This document shows positions 8,863 to 15,445 of a stretch of DNA of 64,000 bases, one piece after another. The stretch lies in the IMG/VR virus record IMGVR_UViG_3300027759_000045, positions 186,001 through 250,000 of that record. One strand, given 5' to 3'. The notes beneath the pieces are model-generated. The model was not told the origin of the DNA. It was given only the letters and a program-made list of their open reading frames with translations, and searched no databases. How positions within the stretch are numbered: the stretch's first letter is position 1; every line of letters starts with the position of its first letter. Both the position numbers and the translations under genes were made by a program.

Positions 8863-9291
8863 ATGACATGGCTATATCAAGATACCCCAATTGAGACATT
8901 GCCCGAAGAGTGTGTTGGATTTGTTTACTTGATCACAAATAATCTTTCTGGACGCAAGTACATAGGCAAAAAATTAGCAAAATTTAGTAAAACAACTTAC
9001 AAAACTGTAACACAAAAGAACGGCACAAAGAAGAAGAAAAAGATACGCTCAAAGATCGACAGCGATTGGCGAGAGTACTATGGGTCAAGCCCAGAATTGA
9101 CTTTAGACATCGAAAAACTAGGCACCAAAAACTTCACCAGAGAAATACTTTATTACTGCGGATCAAAATCTGAATGTAGTTATGTCGAAGCAAGAGAACA
9201 ATTTGCAAGACAAGTATTAGAGTCACAAGATTATTACAACGGCCATATTCAAGTTCGTGTGCATGGCTCACACATCATAAACAAAATTTAA
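8863..9291 (+). CDS. Small GIY-YIG family nuclease (catalytic domain only)
   Basis: GFVY...KYIG, DWREYYGS, F.REIL, E and YYN motifs. 142 aa, no NUMOD/HTH tail, Lys-rich insertion. Confidence 0.85.
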   Translation: MTWLYQDTPIETLPEECVGFVYLITNNLSGRKYIGKKLAKFSKTTYKTVTQKNGTKKKKKIRSKIDSDWREYYGSSPELTLDIEKLGTKNFTREILYYCGSKSECSYVEAREQFARQVLESQDYYNGHIQVRVHGSHIINKI

Positions 9292-9299
9292 CAGGCAAC

Positions 9300-9687
9300 A
9301 ATTACGACTCTGTGTTGAGTGTTTGACTCAACCCCATTGAAGAACGGTGAGATACCCGGGCTGGACTTGGGCGTCAAAGGCAATTGCTAACTTAAGGCAA
9401 CAAATGGTCGGGGCTATGTGAAAAAGATACAACCCCAGCTCGTAGGACTTGGATCTATATCGGGTCACTAGGGTTCCGTTGATATGTGAAGCTTGAGTAG
9501 GGGGTACCGGTCAACCGCCTCCGCGTTGGAAACAACAATCTCATTATGATAGATGACTGCTATACTCAGATAATGGCGTTTTTTGTTCACCGTGCATACG
9601 GTGAACTATGACCACGTAATCTAGATAATAGCTAAGAAGAAAAATGTGATTGAGCTCAAGCGAAATCACAGATTAGCGTAGCTAATC
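9300..9687. ncRNA. Candidate large structured non-coding RNA (family not recognised)
   Basis: ~390 nt with no ORF in the track, and many helices including a perfect 9-bp hairpin (9585-9606), a GAAA tetraloop hairpin (9525-9536) and long-range complementarities. See findings. Confidence 0.55.
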
Positions 9688-9690
9688 TTT
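9671..9690. terminator. Hairpin between convergent units, possibly a terminator
   Basis: GATTAGC-GTA-GCTAATC followed by TTT; overlaps the stop of the minus-strand ORF. Confidence 0.5.
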
Positions 9691-10731
9691 CTTAATCAAC
9701 TGATGTATGTTGGGTTCTAACAACTTGTGTAGGTCTTGTGTATTGGTAGGAAATTTTTCCAATTGCCAATTTTTTAAATTAAGATTATGTCTATAAAGCA
9801 ATGCATTTTGTATGATTACTTCTTTGTAGAAATCTAAATTAAATCTTTCAAGACTCAGATATTCGTTATGCACAATAGCATTGATAATGCGATCAAAGTG
9901 TCTTGAAAAGTATTGATCATGTTTTAATCTCCAAACGTTATATATCAACTGCCATTGGCTAATCTGTGTTGAACTAATTGAAATATCAATAAAATGTAAT
10001 ATTTCAGTTGCTACAGAAAATAGATCATTCCATACATCATCTGTGGTGTACAATAAATGTGGTAATTTTTTATTGATGGCAGAATTGTACAACAGTTGGT
10101 TGTGTGGAGTGTAGTCGTAGAACATCAGTGCTAATTTTTCTCTGTTGTCCCATATGGTATCATTGAATTTATCATCCATGCCTGTAAAAAATGTTTCTTT
10201 GTATGTTTCCCATGAGGCATCAATGCTGTCAACACCAACACCATTGCAATTCATTGGATATCGGTCGTTGTAGATAGCATTTAATTGATCCGTTGACTGA
10301 TACTCAAATTGAACCAATGGTAGATCATGTTGTTGAATCCAATCTACTAGCTTTTTTCTATCTTCAAAAATATAATCTATGGCAAGTTGTTGTTGGGCAA
10401 CAGTTGCCTCTGCTATTGTTATTGCAAACAGTTCTTGTAATGCCTGAGTTGTTGACATGCTATTAACATAAAAACACACAACTGGTAATTCACTGTTAAA
10501 ATTCACTGCCTTGCTGTATTTTTGTTTGGTCTCTTCAAACCCCCAGGACAGTAAAATTTTTTGTTGATGAAAATTTTTAGCAGTAGTGTCTGGATTAACT
10601 ACACAATCAATTAACTGATTATCATCAATTAGGTACTGTGTTTGTCCAGATAAAAAATACAAACTCCAGATAACAAAATGTCCACCGGTGTTGTGAGGAA
10701 AAAATAAAAAAACAAATTTAGTTGAATTCAT
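9682..10731 (-). CDS. Hypothetical protein, paralog of 3235..4122 (AT-rich accessory gene)
   Basis: Likely start MNSTKF at 10731, overlapping the upstream stop. TGGHFVIW loop; C-terminal LEKFPTNTQDLHKLL. Confidence 0.6.
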   Translation of the reverse strand: MNSTKFVFLFFPHNTGGHFVIWSLYFLSGQTQYLIDDNQLIDCVVNPDTTAKNFHQQKILLSWGFEETKQKYSKAVNFNSELPVVCFYVNSMSTTQALQELFAITIAEATVAQQQLAIDYIFEDRKKLVDWIQQHDLPLVQFEYQSTDQLNAIYNDRYPMNCNGVGVDSIDASWETYKETFFTGMDDKFNDTIWDNREKLALMFYDYTPHNQLLYNSAINKKLPHLLYTTDDVWNDLFSVATEILHFIDISISSTQISQWQLIYNVWRLKHDQYFSRHFDRIINAIVHNEYLSLERFNLDFYKEVIIQNALLYRHNLNLKNWQLEKFPTNTQDLHKLLEPNIHQLIKKD

Positions 10732-11056
10732 CTGGCCAATCACGGAACAGTGCATGTTGTATCGTGCCGGAAACAAACTGATTGAAACTTCGATGTTTGG
10801 TTTCTAGTTCACCTTCAAGCGGAGCAACACGTCGAAATGCTGAATCCATTTGAGCCATGTCCTTGAACTCCATCAGTATCATCCATTCGGGCATGTCTGC
10901 AATACTTCTGAATCCCATCTTACATCTAGTAATGCGATAGTCTTGCATCTTGCCTTCTGATTTCAAATGATCAAAGAAACTCTTCATGCCGTTGACCCAG
11001 TCTAAGTCTGAGATGTCGCCTTCTTTGTCTGCCCAAATTGTGTAAATGTCTGCCAT
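10718..11056 (-). CDS. Small dimeric alpha/beta-barrel-like protein (DUF6614-like)
   Basis: DIYTIWAD...ISDLDW...HLKSEGK...RITRCKMG...EW.ILMEF..MAQMDSAF...H; family assignment from recall. Confidence 0.5.
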   Translation of the reverse strand: MADIYTIWADKEGDISDLDWVNGMKSFFDHLKSEGKMQDYRITRCKMGFRSIADMPEWMILMEFKDMAQMDSAFRRVAPLEGELETKHRSFNQFVSGTIQHALFRDWPDEFN

Positions 11057-11057
11057 G

Positions 11058-11489
11058 TTATAGTGGTCCTAAAATTTCAAAACCTTCAAGGTCTTGTTTG
11101 TACAGATGTGCCTGATCCAAGTACAAGTACTCAAATCCACGGTCTCTGTAGATTGCACACTCTGTTTGTAAACTTGAGATACCCAGACGTAGTCGAGGTG
11201 TACGGTAGTTCCAAGCAAACTGTGCGGCTAATAAATTTCGATCATCGTAGCGTTTCATCATGGAAAACGCCACCAGTTCACCCGCATCCCTGTAGCCAAT
11301 AAGATCCATGCCGGGCTCTGTAAACTGGCTATCAAACAGTGGCATTACACTGCCAAAGTGTTTGTAGATACAATAGGTTCTGTAGATGTCTTGCAGTTCA
11401 GCAATGTCGGGGTCGGTGATGTAGTACCAGTCCACTCTAGGCTGGTATGTTGTTTTTTTCAAGTTGATTCTAGCAAACTGATAAGTCAT
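11058..11489 (-). CDS. ATE1/Bpt-like aminoacyl-tRNA-protein transferase C-terminal (GNAT) domain
   Basis: YRDAGELVAFS...FAWNY...LRLGISSLQTECAIYRDRGFEYLYLD...YK..L.GFE parallels the ATE_C pattern (LVAV...SLG..S.L.EI......YLYLG...YK). Confidence 0.65.
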   Translation of the reverse strand: MTYQFARINLKKTTYQPRVDWYYITDPDIAELQDIYRTYCIYKHFGSVMPLFDSQFTEPGMDLIGYRDAGELVAFSMMKRYDDRNLLAAQFAWNYRTPRLRLGISSLQTECAIYRDRGFEYLYLDQAHLYKQDLEGFEILGPL

Positions 11490-11992
11490 AGTCTAGGATC
11501 TTTCCTATGTTGGAACAGTGCTGTGAGATAATGGTTGGGCCATGAGTCATAAAATCCTTTTGCAGCCATTTGTGTTGCTTTGGTGTTGAGATCACTTAGG
11601 CTTTGTACCAGGGCCAGTGCGTATGTGCCTTGATTCATGCAGATACCATTGACCATTTCTACATCAGCCGGATGATCTTCTAGCACCAATATATCTGCAT
11701 CTAATAGAAATTCTTGATTGGCCTGGTCTAAACTAGAAGCAAACAGCTCGTGTGGCCATTCTGTAGGATCGTACGCATAGATAATCACTTCTCGATTGCC
11801 CATGCCGTACCTGGCTCTGTTCTTGAGATCAAAGTATGGGTCTGATCCAACGAACACTTCATAACTGCGTTTCAAACGTGCTGATCGTGCATAAGGACAG
11901 GGCGGAAATCCGCCCAACGCAGGATGCGGAACTTCTACAAAGTTCTGAATCCACTGTTCGATATCGTGTTTGACTTGATCTATGTTCAGCAT
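11486..11992 (-). CDS. DUF1415-like protein
   Basis: WIQNFVE....LGGFPPCPYA and later DHP motif typical of DUF1415. Confidence 0.6.
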   Translation of the reverse strand: MLNIDQVKHDIEQWIQNFVEVPHPALGGFPPCPYARSARLKRSYEVFVGSDPYFDLKNRARYGMGNREVIIYAYDPTEWPHELFASSLDQANQEFLLDADILVLEDHPADVEMVNGICMNQGTYALALVQSLSDLNTKATQMAAKGFYDSWPNHYLTALFQHRKDPRL

Positions 11993-11998
11993 GATGTG

Positions 11999-12229
11999 TT
12001 AGAAAAACGGCAGGCCTGATTTTTTAGTGGTCTCTAAGTTGTCTTTGATAATTTCAGAAACAGCATTGCGTTCATCAACACTGAGATTCAGTGCTGCCTC
12101 GTAGGACAGGCCGCCTCGCATGTACCAGACCATTTTTAGTGCTTCGGATTTGATTGATTTTGCCTCTTTGTCCATTTGTTCCACCCAGTTGGAAATTTGG
12201 TCAGAGTCCAGTACTAGGAGGCGTCCGCG
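11999..12229 (-). CDS. gp51-like baseplate/tail assembly chaperone segment, probably the -1 frameshift extension of 12214..13050
   Basis: WYMRGGLSYEAALNLSVDER resembles gp51/G-T type chaperone C-terminal parts. The frame overlaps the upstream stop at a slippery site. An independent start at MDKEAK is also possible. Confidence 0.6.
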   Translation of the reverse strand, partial: RGRLLVLDSDQISNWVEQMDKEAKSIKSEALKMVWYMRGGLSYEAALNLSVDERNAVSEIIKDNLETTKKSGLPFF

Positions 12230-13050
12230 AAAAAACTTGTCATGTCTAGTGTAATGGCCTGCAGGTAATCTCGTGTGCATTCGCCACACACAATTTTCAA
12301 TGGTTGTATTTCTGCACTTAATTTTGTTTCAATAATGTGATCTCTGATTTTACTAAACAGTCTACGATCACAATTCTTCAACATGTCTTCGATGTATTCA
12401 GGTTCGCTTACCAATGCACCGGGAGTTTTCACTGCGGCAATGCTTTGTGCCAACGCACTCACAGTGATTTCAGTAAGTTTCATCAATGCCGCACTGAGTG
12501 CAGACATGCGTTGCTCTTCGGGCATTTCAGTGCCGGGCAACACTTGTAGTATTTTTTGTTCTTCAAACTGACGTTGATTGTTTTCATTGAGATTTTGATA
12601 GGACATTGGTTTGAAATATATTTCAAGATCGCCTTCGGTTACAGGTTTTGAATAGTCAGGTGCTCGCATGTTTTCCAGCATGTTGCGCAGATCAATACCG
12701 TAGTCTGCTTCATTTTTGCAGTGTGGACAAGTGGTGGAAATTTCCATAGTAGTCCCGTAACTGGCCATGCGTATTGCAACCAAAATAGTGTCAACATCCG
12801 TGGCAGGCATGCCCCAGGGATCCTTGATCGCAGGAACACAACTTTTGATAACATTGACCACAGCGTTGCCGTTGAACAAGGCATCAGGAGTCTTGTATGC
12901 AATTTCATCAATGGCTGTCATTGGATAAACTGGAAGTTCTTGGTTGGCTGGCATCACAATTGCGCCATCTGCATAGTATTTTCCTCCGCTGGGCAATTTA
13001 ACATACACAGCCGGCTGTCTAAAATATTGTGTTAATGGGTTATTTGACAT
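12214..13050 (-). CDS. T4 gp26-like baseplate hub assembly chaperone
   Basis: NPL..YFRQP..YVKLPSGG, PMTAIDE, D.DTILVAIRMAS.G, CPHC and CGEC zinc motifs, terminal SFF. Confidence 0.75.
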   Translation of the reverse strand: MSNNPLTQYFRQPAVYVKLPSGGKYYADGAIVMPANQELPVYPMTAIDEIAYKTPDALFNGNAVVNVIKSCVPAIKDPWGMPATDVDTILVAIRMASYGTTMEISTTCPHCKNEADYGIDLRNMLENMRAPDYSKPVTEGDLEIYFKPMSYQNLNENNQRQFEEQKILQVLPGTEMPEEQRMSALSAALMKLTEITVSALAQSIAAVKTPGALVSEPEYIEDMLKNCDRRLFSKIRDHIIETKLSAEIQPLKIVCGECTRDYLQAITLDMTSFFADAS

Positions 13051-13075: not shown

Positions 13076-15445
13076 ATGGCAACTATGTACACCCCTGAAG
13101 AAAAAGCAGAAATCGAAGCGCGAGCGGCAGATGAAATAAAACGTCTTGGCGCTGTCAGCAATGAAACTAAAATGGCCATGATGGACATGTCTGTTGGTAT
13201 CAAAGGGTTCACTGCTAGTCTAACCAAAGGATTCGGGCAACTGGGGTCTTCTGCGTTAGGTTTGACCAAGCAACTGGCCGGTGGCGAAACTGGCTTATCT
13301 GTATTCAATGATTCAATTGGTGGCGTAACAAATATGTTAGGCGATCTAGCAGGGTTAATTCCTTATGTGGGCGGCGCACTTAAAACAATGATCAAAGGCG
13401 CAGGCGAGTATACACAGGCAGTAAACAAGCAAGCAGATTTACTGAACAAAAATTATCAAGAAATGTCCAAACTTGGTGCCACAGCATCCGACGGCGTTCA
13501 AGGGGTTTATGACAATCTAAAACGCATGAACTACGGCACCGACGAACTGGACAAGTTTGTGAGTATTGTTAGAGAAAACTCAACAACGTTGGCGCATTTT
13601 AGTGGCACAGTCAGTCAAGGACTTGGAGAAATGGCTGCAGTGTCGCAGTCCTTAAAAACCAGCGGCATGAGCCGAGAGTTTGAACTCATGGGCATAAGTG
13701 TTGATGAAATGAACAAAGGCATTGCTGGTTTTTCAAAGATGCAAGCGTTGACAGGATCACGACAAAAACTATCCTCAGAACAGCAGGCCGAGGCAGCTGC
13801 CAAATATATTAAAGAAACAGACTTACTGGCAAAAATGACTGGCCAGAGTAGAGAAAAACAACAGGCGCTGGAAGAAAGCGCCATGGCAGAAGAACGCTTT
13901 GCCGGCTACAAGTCAGAATTGGCAGAACGAGCTAAACTAGGCGATGAAGCGGCGGCAGAACAACTGAAGCAGGTTGAAAGATCACAGAAAATGCTGGCAG
14001 ATGCTTCGCCCGAAACACGCAAAGGGTTCTTAAACATTCTGTCGGGCACAATGGATACTCCTGAAGCACAGAAGTTATTGTTAACTATGCCAGAGGCAGC
14101 AGCAGTAGCAGGTAAAAAGATGTTCGATGCCGGTGAATTGCAGGACGCAATGTTACGGGATCTAACAGCTGGCCAAAAGAATGCTCAACAAATGGCACAA
14201 ATGGGCATCAACGATTCGAGCTATATCAAGTATACCGAGCAAATGAAGTTAAAGGCGCAGTTTGAATCCGGTACACTGGCAGAACGCGAAGCACAGGCTC
14301 TTAAAGAACAAACAATCACAGATCAAAATACCAAAGATATAGTTGATACCAACATTAAAAACCGTGCATCACGCGACAGTTTGCAAGATTTACTCAATGC
14401 CGGGATTGGTCCAGTTTCTACTGCCATGAAGGGAGCAGCATCTGCTACCGAAAGTGTTATCACGGGCTTTGAAAAATTAGCGGCATCTATGGGCGTTCCG
14501 ACTAAAAAACGCGATGCGGCACCAGCGGCAGGTGGAGCAGGAGGTGGAGCCTCTGCGGCAGCCCCAGCGGCAGCTAAGCCAGCGGCAGGTGGAGCAGGAG
14601 GTGGAGCCTCTGCGGCAGCCCCAGCGGCAGCTAAGCCAGCGGCAGGTGGAGCAGGAGGTGGAGCAGGAGGTGGAGCCTCTGCGGCAGCCCCAGCGGCAGC
14701 TAAGCCAGCGGCAGCTAAGCCAGCGGCGGGTGGTGGAGCAGGAGGTGGAGCAGGAGGAGCCGGAGGAGCACCAGCAAAACCCAGCCCTCGACCACCAGAA
14801 GGATCCGGAGCATCAGAATCTGGCTCTGAAAAAGTTGATTTAACAAAAATATTAAAATTTACTGCTAGATCTGGCAGCCAACAAAGTTTTGAAGGACTAA
14901 CCGACACATTTAAAAATTCTGTTATCTCTGCCGCAACTGAGTATAGTAAATTAACCGGCGGTGTGTTGCAGATTAACAGTGCTAAACGAGATCCAGCAGA
15001 CCAGCAAAGAATCTGGGATGAATCAGTAGCAGCCGGCAGAACGGGTGTAACTGCCAGTGGTATGCCTATAGGCAAACCAGGCCGTAGTCTACACGAAAAA
15101 GGCGAAGCAGTTGATATTCAAAATTACAACGATCCAATAGCTGTGACAGCCATGAACAAATATGGATTGACACAAAAAGTGCCCAAAGATCCTGTGCATT
15201 TCCAGGCTGCAGACGGCGGCATAGTTCCTCCGTTGCCAGGGGGAGCAAATGTACTGGCAGGTGAAGCCGGCCAGTCCGAAGCAGTGGTTCCATTGCCGGA
15301 TGGCAAGACAATACCTGTGCAAATGGTGGGCAATGAAGAACAAATGAGCATGATGTCTGCACAGCTGGATAGACTAGACCAAATGGTACGCATAATGCAA
15401 ACTCAAGTGGGTGTGTCAGAGCAATTATTGAAGTATGCACAGTGA
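13076..15445 (+). CDS. Tape-measure/baseplate-hub-like protein with C-terminal M15 (VanY-like) peptidoglycan peptidase
   Basis: ~480 aa Ala/Gln/Glu/Met-rich helical region, Ala/Gly/Pro linker, then INSAKR...Q..IW...SLHEKGEAVDI...DPVHF, then GEAG.SEAVVPL. Confidence 0.7.
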   Translation: MATMYTPEEKAEIEARAADEIKRLGAVSNETKMAMMDMSVGIKGFTASLTKGFGQLGSSALGLTKQLAGGETGLSVFNDSIGGVTNMLGDLAGLIPYVGGALKTMIKGAGEYTQAVNKQADLLNKNYQEMSKLGATASDGVQGVYDNLKRMNYGTDELDKFVSIVRENSTTLAHFSGTVSQGLGEMAAVSQSLKTSGMSREFELMGISVDEMNKGIAGFSKMQALTGSRQKLSSEQQAEAAAKYIKETDLLAKMTGQSREKQQALEESAMAEERFAGYKSELAERAKLGDEAAAEQLKQVERSQKMLADASPETRKGFLNILSGTMDTPEAQKLLLTMPEAAAVAGKKMFDAGELQDAMLRDLTAGQKNAQQMAQMGINDSSYIKYTEQMKLKAQFESGTLAEREAQALKEQTITDQNTKDIVDTNIKNRASRDSLQDLLNAGIGPVSTAMKGAASATESVITGFEKLAASMGVPTKKRDAAPAAGGAGGGASAAAPAAAKPAAGGAGGGASAAAPAAAKPAAGGAGGGAGGGASAAAPAAAKPAAAKPAAGGGAGGGAGGAGGAPAKPSPRPPEGSGASESGSEKVDLTKILKFTARSGSQQSFEGLTDTFKNSVISAATEYSKLTGGVLQINSAKRDPADQQRIWDESVAAGRTGVTASGMPIGKPGRSLHEKGEAVDIQNYNDPIAVTAMNKYGLTQKVPKDPVHFQAADGGIVPPLPGGANVLAGEAGQSEAVVPLPDGKTIPVQMVGNEEQMSMMSAQLDRLDQMVRIMQTQVGVSEQLLKYAQ
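14522..14760 (+). repeat. 57-bp tandem repeat (PAAGGAGGGASAAAPAAAK), ~3 copies plus partial units
   Basis: Identical units at 14522-14578 and 14579-14635; third unit has an internal 12-bp duplication, followed by 15-bp sub-repeats. Confidence 0.92.

Follow-up and report, generated by a model that had tools for sequence, protein, structure and literature searches.

A conserved gene pair in a freshwater jumbo phage encodes a minimal ATE_C-type GNAT and a heme-enzyme-like partner

We examined a compact group of minus-strand genes in a 64,000-nucleotide stretch (hereafter, the window) of a freshwater jumbo phage, corresponding to positions 186,001 to 250,000 of IMG/VR record IMGVR_UViG_3300027759_000045. 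Three open reading frames encode proteins of 168 aa (A168; 11486-11992), 143 aa (B143; 11058-11489) and 112 aa (C112; 10718-11056). The A stop and the B start share ATGA, a 4-nt overlap, and a single base separates the B stop (TAA) from the C start (ATG). The existence and tight packing of the three genes, as described in an earlier note made from the sequence alone, were therefore confirmed. That these are real genes is supported by their conservation, as B has 2423 relatives in a word search and 251 loci in IMG/VR, and A and C are conserved beside it. The description does, however, require several corrections. The upstream genes, taken in the note for tail chaperone genes, are a T4 gp26-type baseplate-hub gene (PF12322, phrog_150) and a 96-aa ORF, and are not demonstrated tail chaperones. 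In addition, a fourth minus-strand ORF (D, about 350 aa; 9682-10734), whose ATG overlaps the end of C, may belong to the same transcription unit. D is a fast-evolving ORFan that is 27-38% identical or absent in related loci, has no Pfam match and has only hypothetical relatives; it is a possible operon member but is not shown to be part of the system.

B143 is a single-domain GNAT that belongs to a divergent branch of the ATE_C family (PF04377) of ATE1/Bpt aminoacyl-tRNA transferases. ATE_C is its only Pfam match, at 20.2 bits against a gathering cut-off of 25, whereas relatives of B (P0124, P0138, P0159, P0223 and others) score 26.2-49.2 bits; by this criterion alone, the membership of B143 itself is left undecided. 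A profile search found 141 relatives, including long forms of 225-274 aa. An hhalign comparison with cellular Bpt-like proteins gave a probability of 76.7% and an E-value of 2.1e-5 over 106 columns, with G103, E110 and Y130-K131 aligned to the invariant G163, E170 and Y196-K197, and this Lys has been identified as the conserved active-site residue (PMC9351520). B143 shares with ATE1/Bpt a GNAT core with the "xLG" loop Gly, a helix Glu, the "Y-x-Y-L-G"-type strand and a Tyr-Lys followed by "GFE". However, it begins at the "YQFARINL" strand, the last strand of the N-lobe, and ends just after the "GFEILG" motif. It therefore lacks the whole ATE_N lobe, which in klAte1 binds the protein N-terminus, as well as the Cys4 metal site and the C-terminal extension, and Pfam finds no ATE_N. 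The long-form relatives also lack the Cys residues and give no ATE_N hit.

The AF2 model of B143 (pLDDT 87.7) adopts the GNAT fold. In the VIA structural comparison, the top hit was VipF with acetyl-CoA (Z 13.4), followed by FemX (Z 12.7) and MprF, an aa-PG synthase (Z 12.5), while human ATE1 scored Z 9.8 with 140 residues aligned. The best neighbors covering the full length in Foldseek and VIA are aminoacyl-tRNA-dependent GNATs (9wqy, E 5.6e-6; FemX; MprF; Sba18/Sbb17), which show that this fold serves small-molecule and lipid acceptors as well as proteins; these are tandem-GNAT proteins of 290-400 aa or more, without significant sequence similarity to B143. The note had named modeling as an ordinary acetyl-CoA GNAT as grounds for abandoning its reading. 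On this point, acetyl-CoA GNATs such as VipF and MshD rank as high as the aminoacyl-tRNA enzymes, and many single-domain acetyltransferases score Z 10-11, so the fold alone does not exclude that family. Nevertheless, no acetyltransferase Pfam family matches B143 at E up to 1, and by inspection the pyrophosphate-binding motif A (Q/R-x-x-G-x-G/A) is not reproduced; the loop reads L100-R-L-G103-I-S105, with E, K, L or H at position 105 in relatives, and has the form L100-x-x-G103-x-S/E/K105 as in Bpt-like proteins. Furthermore, structural matches spanning residues 1-143 are to tandem-GNAT and aminoacyl-tRNA enzymes, whereas single-domain acetyltransferases align only from about residue 18.

A168 had been proposed to be a DUF1415-like protein, its Cys/His motifs (CPYA, DHP) supplying a metal-binding part missing from the transferase. 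Both motifs are invariant in the family (C32-P33-x-A35 and D106-H107-P108), but the protein is predicted to be an autonomous α/β sandwich rather than a missing metal finger. The AF2 model (pLDDT 94.9) has four main strands and six helices, and this four-stranded sheet flanked by helices corresponds to the arrangement described for Mc170. Its best VIA match is AglA (9ub3_A; Z 7.3, rmsd 3.9, 149 of 168 residues aligned), a YqcI/YcgG thiolate-heme N-hydroxylase and the only solved structure that clearly matches, with the next hit at Z 4.2. A structural match in the Atlas (TM 0.82) is to a DUF1415/DUF6875-labeled cluster. DUF6875 is cytochrome P422, a Cys-ligated heme enzyme that acts on free Trp. 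At the sequence level, A168 does not belong to any of these Pfam families (PF21780, PF07209 or PF08892): DUF6875 scores 18 bits against a cut-off of 24.5, covering only residues 10-48, the N-terminal helix and Cys-Pro loop, with weak hits in 14 of 20 family members, and there is no DUF1415 or YqcI hit. Cys32-Pro33 lies within this aligned segment, between helices 1 and 2, but the motif reads LGG(F/W)PPCP rather than the P422 RxGxVCP, and no residue-level superposition was available to confirm that Cys32 corresponds to AglA Cys44; its role as the axial Cys is left open. The Trp-binding motifs of P422 are not recognizable, and A168 has an invariant DHP motif of its own.

C112 is a DUF6614 protein (PF20319; 79.6 bits against a cut-off of 25) of unknown function and fold; the small barrel fold suggested in the note was not tested. 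It is the most conserved of the three, being 64-95% identical in loci where A is only 32-37% identical, and lies beside B, or beside an inserted amidinotransferase gene, in most loci. A six-frame search of the phage genome found one copy. DUF6614 was considered as an anti-Druantia factor (Druad1), but this lead was rejected because Druad1 is a 44-aa protein with no BLAST relatives and its DUF6614 label is only a prediction.

Whether the genes co-occur in other genomes had likewise been set in advance as a test, and they do. A and B lie next to each other in 92 of 93 loci examined, the other locus being cut off just upstream of B, and the pairing holds down to about 32% identity, covering five short-form lineages at 40-52% B identity and two long-form lineages at about 32% or below. 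More distant long-form B lineages, however, have no A neighbor, and B-type proteins in other lineages sit beside a different conserved partner of about 181-212 aa. The genes flanking the pair differ between lineages (baseplate hub, RNR, SOD with radical SAM, or a desaturase), and the pair is therefore not tied to tail genes. In 21 loci, a homolog (E) of L-arginine:glycine amidinotransferase sits inside or beside the pair, in five arrangements. It is inserted as A-B-E-C, A-E-B-C or E/B/A in 20 loci of at least four lineages, and lies about 2 kb downstream on the opposite strand in one more. These inserted 1.1-kb segments were considered as homing endonucleases, a possibility rejected because they encode the amidinotransferase homolog. 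A profile of this protein against the PDB matched AGAT (E 3e-21), HsvA, SxtG and StrB1, with invariant "GGHxD" and "GGxHCxT" aligned to AGAT "PHIDA" and "GGFHCWT", thus retaining the catalytic His-x-Asp and Cys. The window's own cassette lacks this gene, and such paralogs number 2-4 per genome in this clade, so some insertions could be incidental.

Taken together, our best reading, held at a probability of about 0.4, is that A168 and B143 form a conserved two-enzyme module, often extended by DUF6614 and, in relatives, by an amidinotransferase, which acts on a small amino-acid-derived, probably guanidino or arginine-type, substrate. In this view, B143 would take an aminoacyl group from host aminoacyl-tRNA and form an amide bond with an amine acceptor, with Tyr130-Lys131 playing the role of klAte1 Tyr303-Lys304 or FemX Lys305, and A168, as a probable thiolate-heme oxygenase with Cys32 as the proposed axial ligand, would hydroxylate or otherwise oxidize the substrate or the product. 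What our analysis demonstrates is the gene structure, the family and fold assignments, the conserved residues and the gene linkage; tRNA as the donor, heme binding, the small-molecule acceptor and the order of steps are inferences, as there is no biochemical evidence and neither aminoacyl transfer nor heme binding was assayed. This reading is favored by the absence of an acceptor lobe in B143 and by the partners, since the amidinotransferase family and the AglA/P422 families are known only on small molecules. On the other hand, all characterized ATE_C members modify protein N-termini, and no 2Fe-2S (Fer2) ferredoxin gene was found in the phage genome.

The logic matches that of argolaphos biosynthesis, in which AglC, an aminoacyl-tRNA-dependent ligase, makes AMPn-Arg with ArgRS and tRNA, and the Cys44-ligated AglA N-hydroxylates it. 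The argolaphos cluster carries GNAT proteins of 342 and 356 aa annotated as pfam13480 and COG3146, not ATE_C, although which of them is AglC was not checked. In addition, A168 has 168 aa against 274 aa for AglA, there are no phosphonate genes here, and the setting is a phage rather than a Streptomyces gene cluster. A more far-reaching version, which we consider unlikely but which the data do not rule out, is a phage-borne secondary-metabolite pathway that hijacks host aminoacyl-tRNA: an amidinotransferase makes a guanidino amine, the mini-ATE couples an amino acid to it from charged tRNA, and the thiolate-heme enzyme N-oxygenates the product, yielding an argolaphos- or hydroxyarginine-like antimetabolite or signal during infection of freshwater bacteria.

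The main idea of the earlier note, N-degron tagging, remains a live rival, although we regard it as less likely. Here, B143 would add a destabilizing residue from aminoacyl-tRNA to protein N-termini, A168 would prepare the acceptor, for example by oxidizing an N-terminal residue as in the Cys branch of the Arg/N-degron pathway, and the tag would be read by ClpS-ClpAP, including the phage's own ClpS. An oxidase followed by ATE1 is an established N-degron logic, the nearest sequence family of B is ATE_C, whose characterized members are N-terminal protein transferases, the phage encodes ClpS in a ClpX/GroES/Hsp20 cluster, and the distant long-form B P0223 lies 3.5 kb from a ClpS gene. However, ClpS is also present in PA5oct, which has no cassette, and is thus a lineage trait; B143 lacks the lobe that forms the pocket for the acceptor N-terminus; and the recurrent amidinotransferase and the AglA/P422-like partner belong to families known only on small molecules. 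Tagging of host proteins or of gp21-generated scaffold fragments, as the note proposed, was not tested, and the phage ClpS gene is the only new point in its favor.

A heteromeric transferase appears less likely still. In such an arrangement, A168, or the alternative partner family beside distant long forms, would be a structural or acceptor-presenting subunit replacing the lost ATE_N lobe, possibly acting on a macromolecule such as a virion protein, tRNA or DNA, rather than an independent oxygenase. The translational coupling through ATGA, the co-conservation of A and B, the alternative partner, and the loss in the short form of both the N and C extensions of the long form are consistent with this view. 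Against it, long forms that retain their own N-lobe still pair with A, which led us to reject A as a simple substitute for ATE_N; A-like proteins stand alone, without B, in the cultured marine phages HMO-2011, CRP-810 and S-PM2; and A has an enzyme-like set of invariant polar residues. Complex prediction, which had also been put forward beforehand as a check, gave no answer for A168, heme and B143 (score 0.08 against a mark of 0.32), which is not evidence either way. Least likely is an ordinary acyl-CoA GNAT that acetylates or acylates a small molecule or protein, its ATE_C resemblance reflecting only common GNAT ancestry, which the VipF match and the sub-threshold ATE_C score would allow but which the family, motif and alignment evidence above disfavors.

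The interpretation offered in the earlier note was thus only partly supported. The middle protein is a genuine, C-domain-only relative of ATE1/Bpt-type aminoacyl-tRNA transferases, and the note's alternative, an aminoacylated small molecule, is the reading that the new evidence favors, whereas the first protein as the missing metal-binding part of the transferase is not supported. ATE1/Bpt-type transferases are known only as writers of protein N-degrons, and literature searches on the cassette's families and on ATE1/Bpt found no report of a phage version. A 143-aa, single-domain member would be the smallest known ATE_C enzyme, and its genomic link to an AglA/P422-like protein, together with the recurrent link to an amidinotransferase, would extend that family to small-molecule chemistry and add an unusual kind of auxiliary metabolism to abundant lake phages. 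If the N-degron reading is right instead, this would be the first phage N-degron writer, operating alongside a phage ClpS. The three proteins are small and soluble-looking.

Among GenBank phages, the region had no nucleotide match and B and C had no protein match; sequence and profile searches of the PDB with A, B and C returned nothing significant, and NCBIfam gave no hits. Neither DUF6614 nor DUF6875 was found in 300 and 201 sampled genomes of the phylum of the Haliscomenobacter MAG, so no cellular context could be obtained, and a scan of genome contigs returned only mis-binned related-phage contigs. The σ70 promoter and terminator scans were at chance level, the T4 late-promoter motif TATAAATA is absent from the window, and there are no tRNA genes in the window. 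Metatranscriptome contigs hold only short pieces of A, B and C at 85-95% identity, which is compatible with expression of relatives but not proof. Relatives were found in lake and freshwater metagenomes from 24 studies, and there are more than 2400 close protein relatives.

The cassette lies within the window, bases 186001-250000 of a 346,856-bp IMG/VR virus record with direct terminal repeats. Judged by its gp46-like protein, the nearest cultured relatives of this phage are PA5oct-like Pseudomonas jumbo phages, at 44% amino-acid identity. Near-identical and related DNA occurs in lake and freshwater metagenomes from 24 studies. The only hit in a cellular genome was a Haliscomenobacter metagenome-assembled genome (MAG; loci L098, L107 and L108), which holds two different contigs with the phage's hub-A-B-C-segE synteny, with B 64% and 60% identical. 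We regard this as mis-binned phage DNA or, at best, a weak hint at a Bacteroidota host.

The observation made in the earlier note held: three minus-strand ORFs lie exactly as it had described, namely A168 (11486-11992), B143 (11058-11489), whose start shares ATGA with the A stop, and C112 (10718-11056), which begins one base after the B stop. The genes are real, as B has 2423 close relatives and 251 IMG/VR loci. However, the preceding genes, which the note had taken for tail chaperones, are a T4 gp26-type baseplate-hub gene (12214-13050, minus strand; PF12322, phrog_150) and a 96-aa ORF (11999-12289, minus strand), and are not proven tail chaperones. This 96-aa ORF overlaps the 3' end of the hub gene by 76 nt in another frame, which could reflect a mis-set start or a programmed overlap or frameshift. 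On the other side, the start of a fast-evolving ORFan of about 350 aa (9682-10734, minus strand) overlaps the stop of C112; all 170 of its relatives are hypothetical and none has a Pfam match.

For B143, Pfam gave only ATE_C, at 20.2 bits against a cut-off of 25. A profile search of 1.8 billion representatives found 141 relatives, which fall into short forms of about 140-155 aa and long forms of 225-274 aa whose C-terminal part matches B143. Many of both groups pass the ATE_C cut-off, at 26-49 bits, whereas none matches ATE_N. The long forms carry a Cys-less N-terminal segment ('ALEQGW…WYQSRSTRINL') and a C-terminal extension, while B143 starts at 'YQFARINL' and ends just after 'GFEILG', and is therefore the bare GNAT core. 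An hhalign comparison with cellular Bpt-like proteins taken from Bacteroidota genomes gave 76.7% probability (E 2.1e-5), with G103, E110 and Y130-K131 of B143 aligned to that family's invariant G163, E170 and Y196-K197. In klAte1, the corresponding Lys304 (FemX Lys305) is the conserved active-site residue, and the ATE_N lobe forms the pocket for the acceptor N-terminus (PMC9351520).

The earlier note had stated that its reading would fail if the middle ORF modelled as an ordinary acetyl-CoA GNAT, and the predicted structure did not separate the alternatives. The AF2 model (pLDDT 87.7) is a GNAT, and the best Foldseek hits are the aminoacyl-tRNA-dependent peptide synthase Sba18, MprF and ATE1, but also acetyl-CoA tandem GNATs. 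Similarly, a VIA structure search ranked VipF, FemX and MprF together at Z 12.5-13.4. Fold alone therefore does not decide the donor, although the sequence family and the degenerate motif-A loop favour aminoacyl-tRNA.

The A168 family alignment shows W14, C32-P33, A35, D106-H107-P108, N120, Q130, G146, Y148 and W151 to be invariant. Pfam gave only sub-threshold DUF6875 hits over the N-terminal helix and the Cys-Pro loop, in 14 of 20 members, and no hit to DUF1415, the family that the earlier note had likened it to. The AF2 model (pLDDT 94.9) has four main strands flanked by helices. Although Foldseek found nothing significant in the PDB, an exhaustive VIA search singled out AglA (9ub3_A) at Z 7.3, with 149 of 168 residues aligned and the next hit at Z 4.2, and the Atlas structure search gave TM 0.82 to a cluster whose members carry DUF6875 and DUF1415 labels. 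DUF6875 was recently renamed cytochrome P422, a Cys-ligated b-heme enzyme family acting on tryptophan (bioRxiv 10.64898/2025.12.11.692455), and AglA is a YqcI/YcgG thiolate-heme N-hydroxylase with Cys44 as the ligand (PMC12866846). A168 is thus most likely a small thiolate-heme enzyme.

C112 belongs to DUF6614 (79.6 bits) and is the most conserved of the three proteins, being 64-95% identical where A is only 32-37% identical. No PDB sequence relative was found, and its fold was not determined. In four lake, river and freshwater metatranscriptome runs, short contig pieces, 85-95% identical, cover C and, in some runs, B and A. This is compatible with transcription of relatives but does not prove it. 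One of the pieces spans the B/C junction.

Co-occurrence of the three genes in other genomes had also been named beforehand as a condition on which the cassette would stand or fall, and the order A-B-C is kept in 80 IMG/VR loci. Because these loci are all one clade, we also examined distant B relatives. An A homolog lies directly beside B in all five short-form lineages examined (those of the B relatives P0122, P0124, P0127, P0138 and P0143, at 40-52% B identity) and in two long-form lineages (P0169 and P0189), where the genes are convergent. In contrast, three more distant long-form lineages lack A. Two of them (P0223 and P0256) share a different adjacent partner family of about 181-212 aa and of unknown function (L122:4784-5329, minus strand, and L124:809-1447, plus strand, in the two loci concerned), 37.6% identical between the two lineages.

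The 1.1-kb insertions seen in some loci encode a 366-412-aa protein (E) homologous to L-arginine:glycine amidinotransferase, HsvA, SxtG and StrB1 (E 3e-21), with the His-x-Asp and catalytic Cys motifs intact. This gene sits inside or beside the pair in 21 of 93 loci: as A-B-E-C in nine, as A-B-E in five where the locus is truncated, as A-E-B-C in three, as E/B/A with long-form B in three, and as A-B-C with E about 2 kb downstream on the opposite strand in one. The window's own cassette lacks it. Amidinotransferase-like paralogs lie elsewhere in the phage's own genome (L105:7558-8577, equivalent to G000:C1:136557-137576 of the phage record, and L106:3976-4893); one, unlinked to the cassette and of about 339 aa, sits in a tight operon with a radical-SAM/SPASM gene, and a weaker one sits next to a UDP-glucose dehydrogenase-like gene. 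Genomes of this clade carry 2-4 such paralogs each, and PA5oct carries none.

The partner families, AglA/P422-like and amidinotransferase, are known only on free amino acids and other small molecules, and B143 lacks the protein-acceptor lobe. Furthermore, the genes flanking the pair vary between lineages, including a baseplate hub, RNR, SOD with radical SAM, or a desaturase. The closest precedent is argolaphos biosynthesis, in which AMPn-Arg is formed by AglC with ArgRS and tRNA and is then N-hydroxylated by AglA. We therefore favour, with a probability of about 0.4, a tRNA-dependent amide-forming step coupled to oxidative tailoring of an arginine- or guanidino-type small molecule. While the gene structure, family and fold assignments, conserved residues and linkage rest on the analysis itself, the use of aminoacyl-tRNA by B143 and heme binding by A168 are our inferences, as are the small-molecule acceptor and the order of steps. 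The interpretation offered in the earlier note, a phage-encoded tRNA-dependent tagging system, was only partly supported.

Among the alternatives, the N-degron writing proposed in that note survives best, although we consider it unlikely. In its favour, the phage encodes ClpS (PF02617, 72 bits) next to a ClpX-like C-terminus, a GroES-like ORF and an Hsp20-like ORF, forming a proteostasis cluster outside the window (L117:1-3234, equivalent to G000:C1:314601-317834), and one distant long-form B (in L122) lies 3.5 kb from a ClpS gene, which is upstream. ClpS is also present in three related near-complete jumbo genomes. However, it also occurs in Pseudomonas phage PA5oct, which lacks the cassette. 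An A/B heteromer acting on a macromolecule is somewhat more doubtful, and an ordinary acetyl-CoA GNAT is the least likely of the three.

Literature searches on the cassette's families and on ATE1/Bpt found no phage ATE/Bpt-type transferase and no description of this gene pair. The parts belong to known superfamilies; what appears new is the minimal ATE_C architecture, its conserved pairing with an AglA/P422-like protein, and the phage setting.

A segE-type GIY-YIG homing endonuclease gene (8863-9291, plus strand; PF19835, E 9.5e-33) lies just beyond the cassette and is conserved at 70-96% identity near the cassette in most related loci. Divergently transcribed from the hub gene, a 789-aa protein (13076-15445, plus strand) carries three copies of an Ala/Gly/Pro-rich repeat (AAPAAAKPAAGGAGGG-type; repeats at about 14500-14850) and is only 26-69% identical among relatives.
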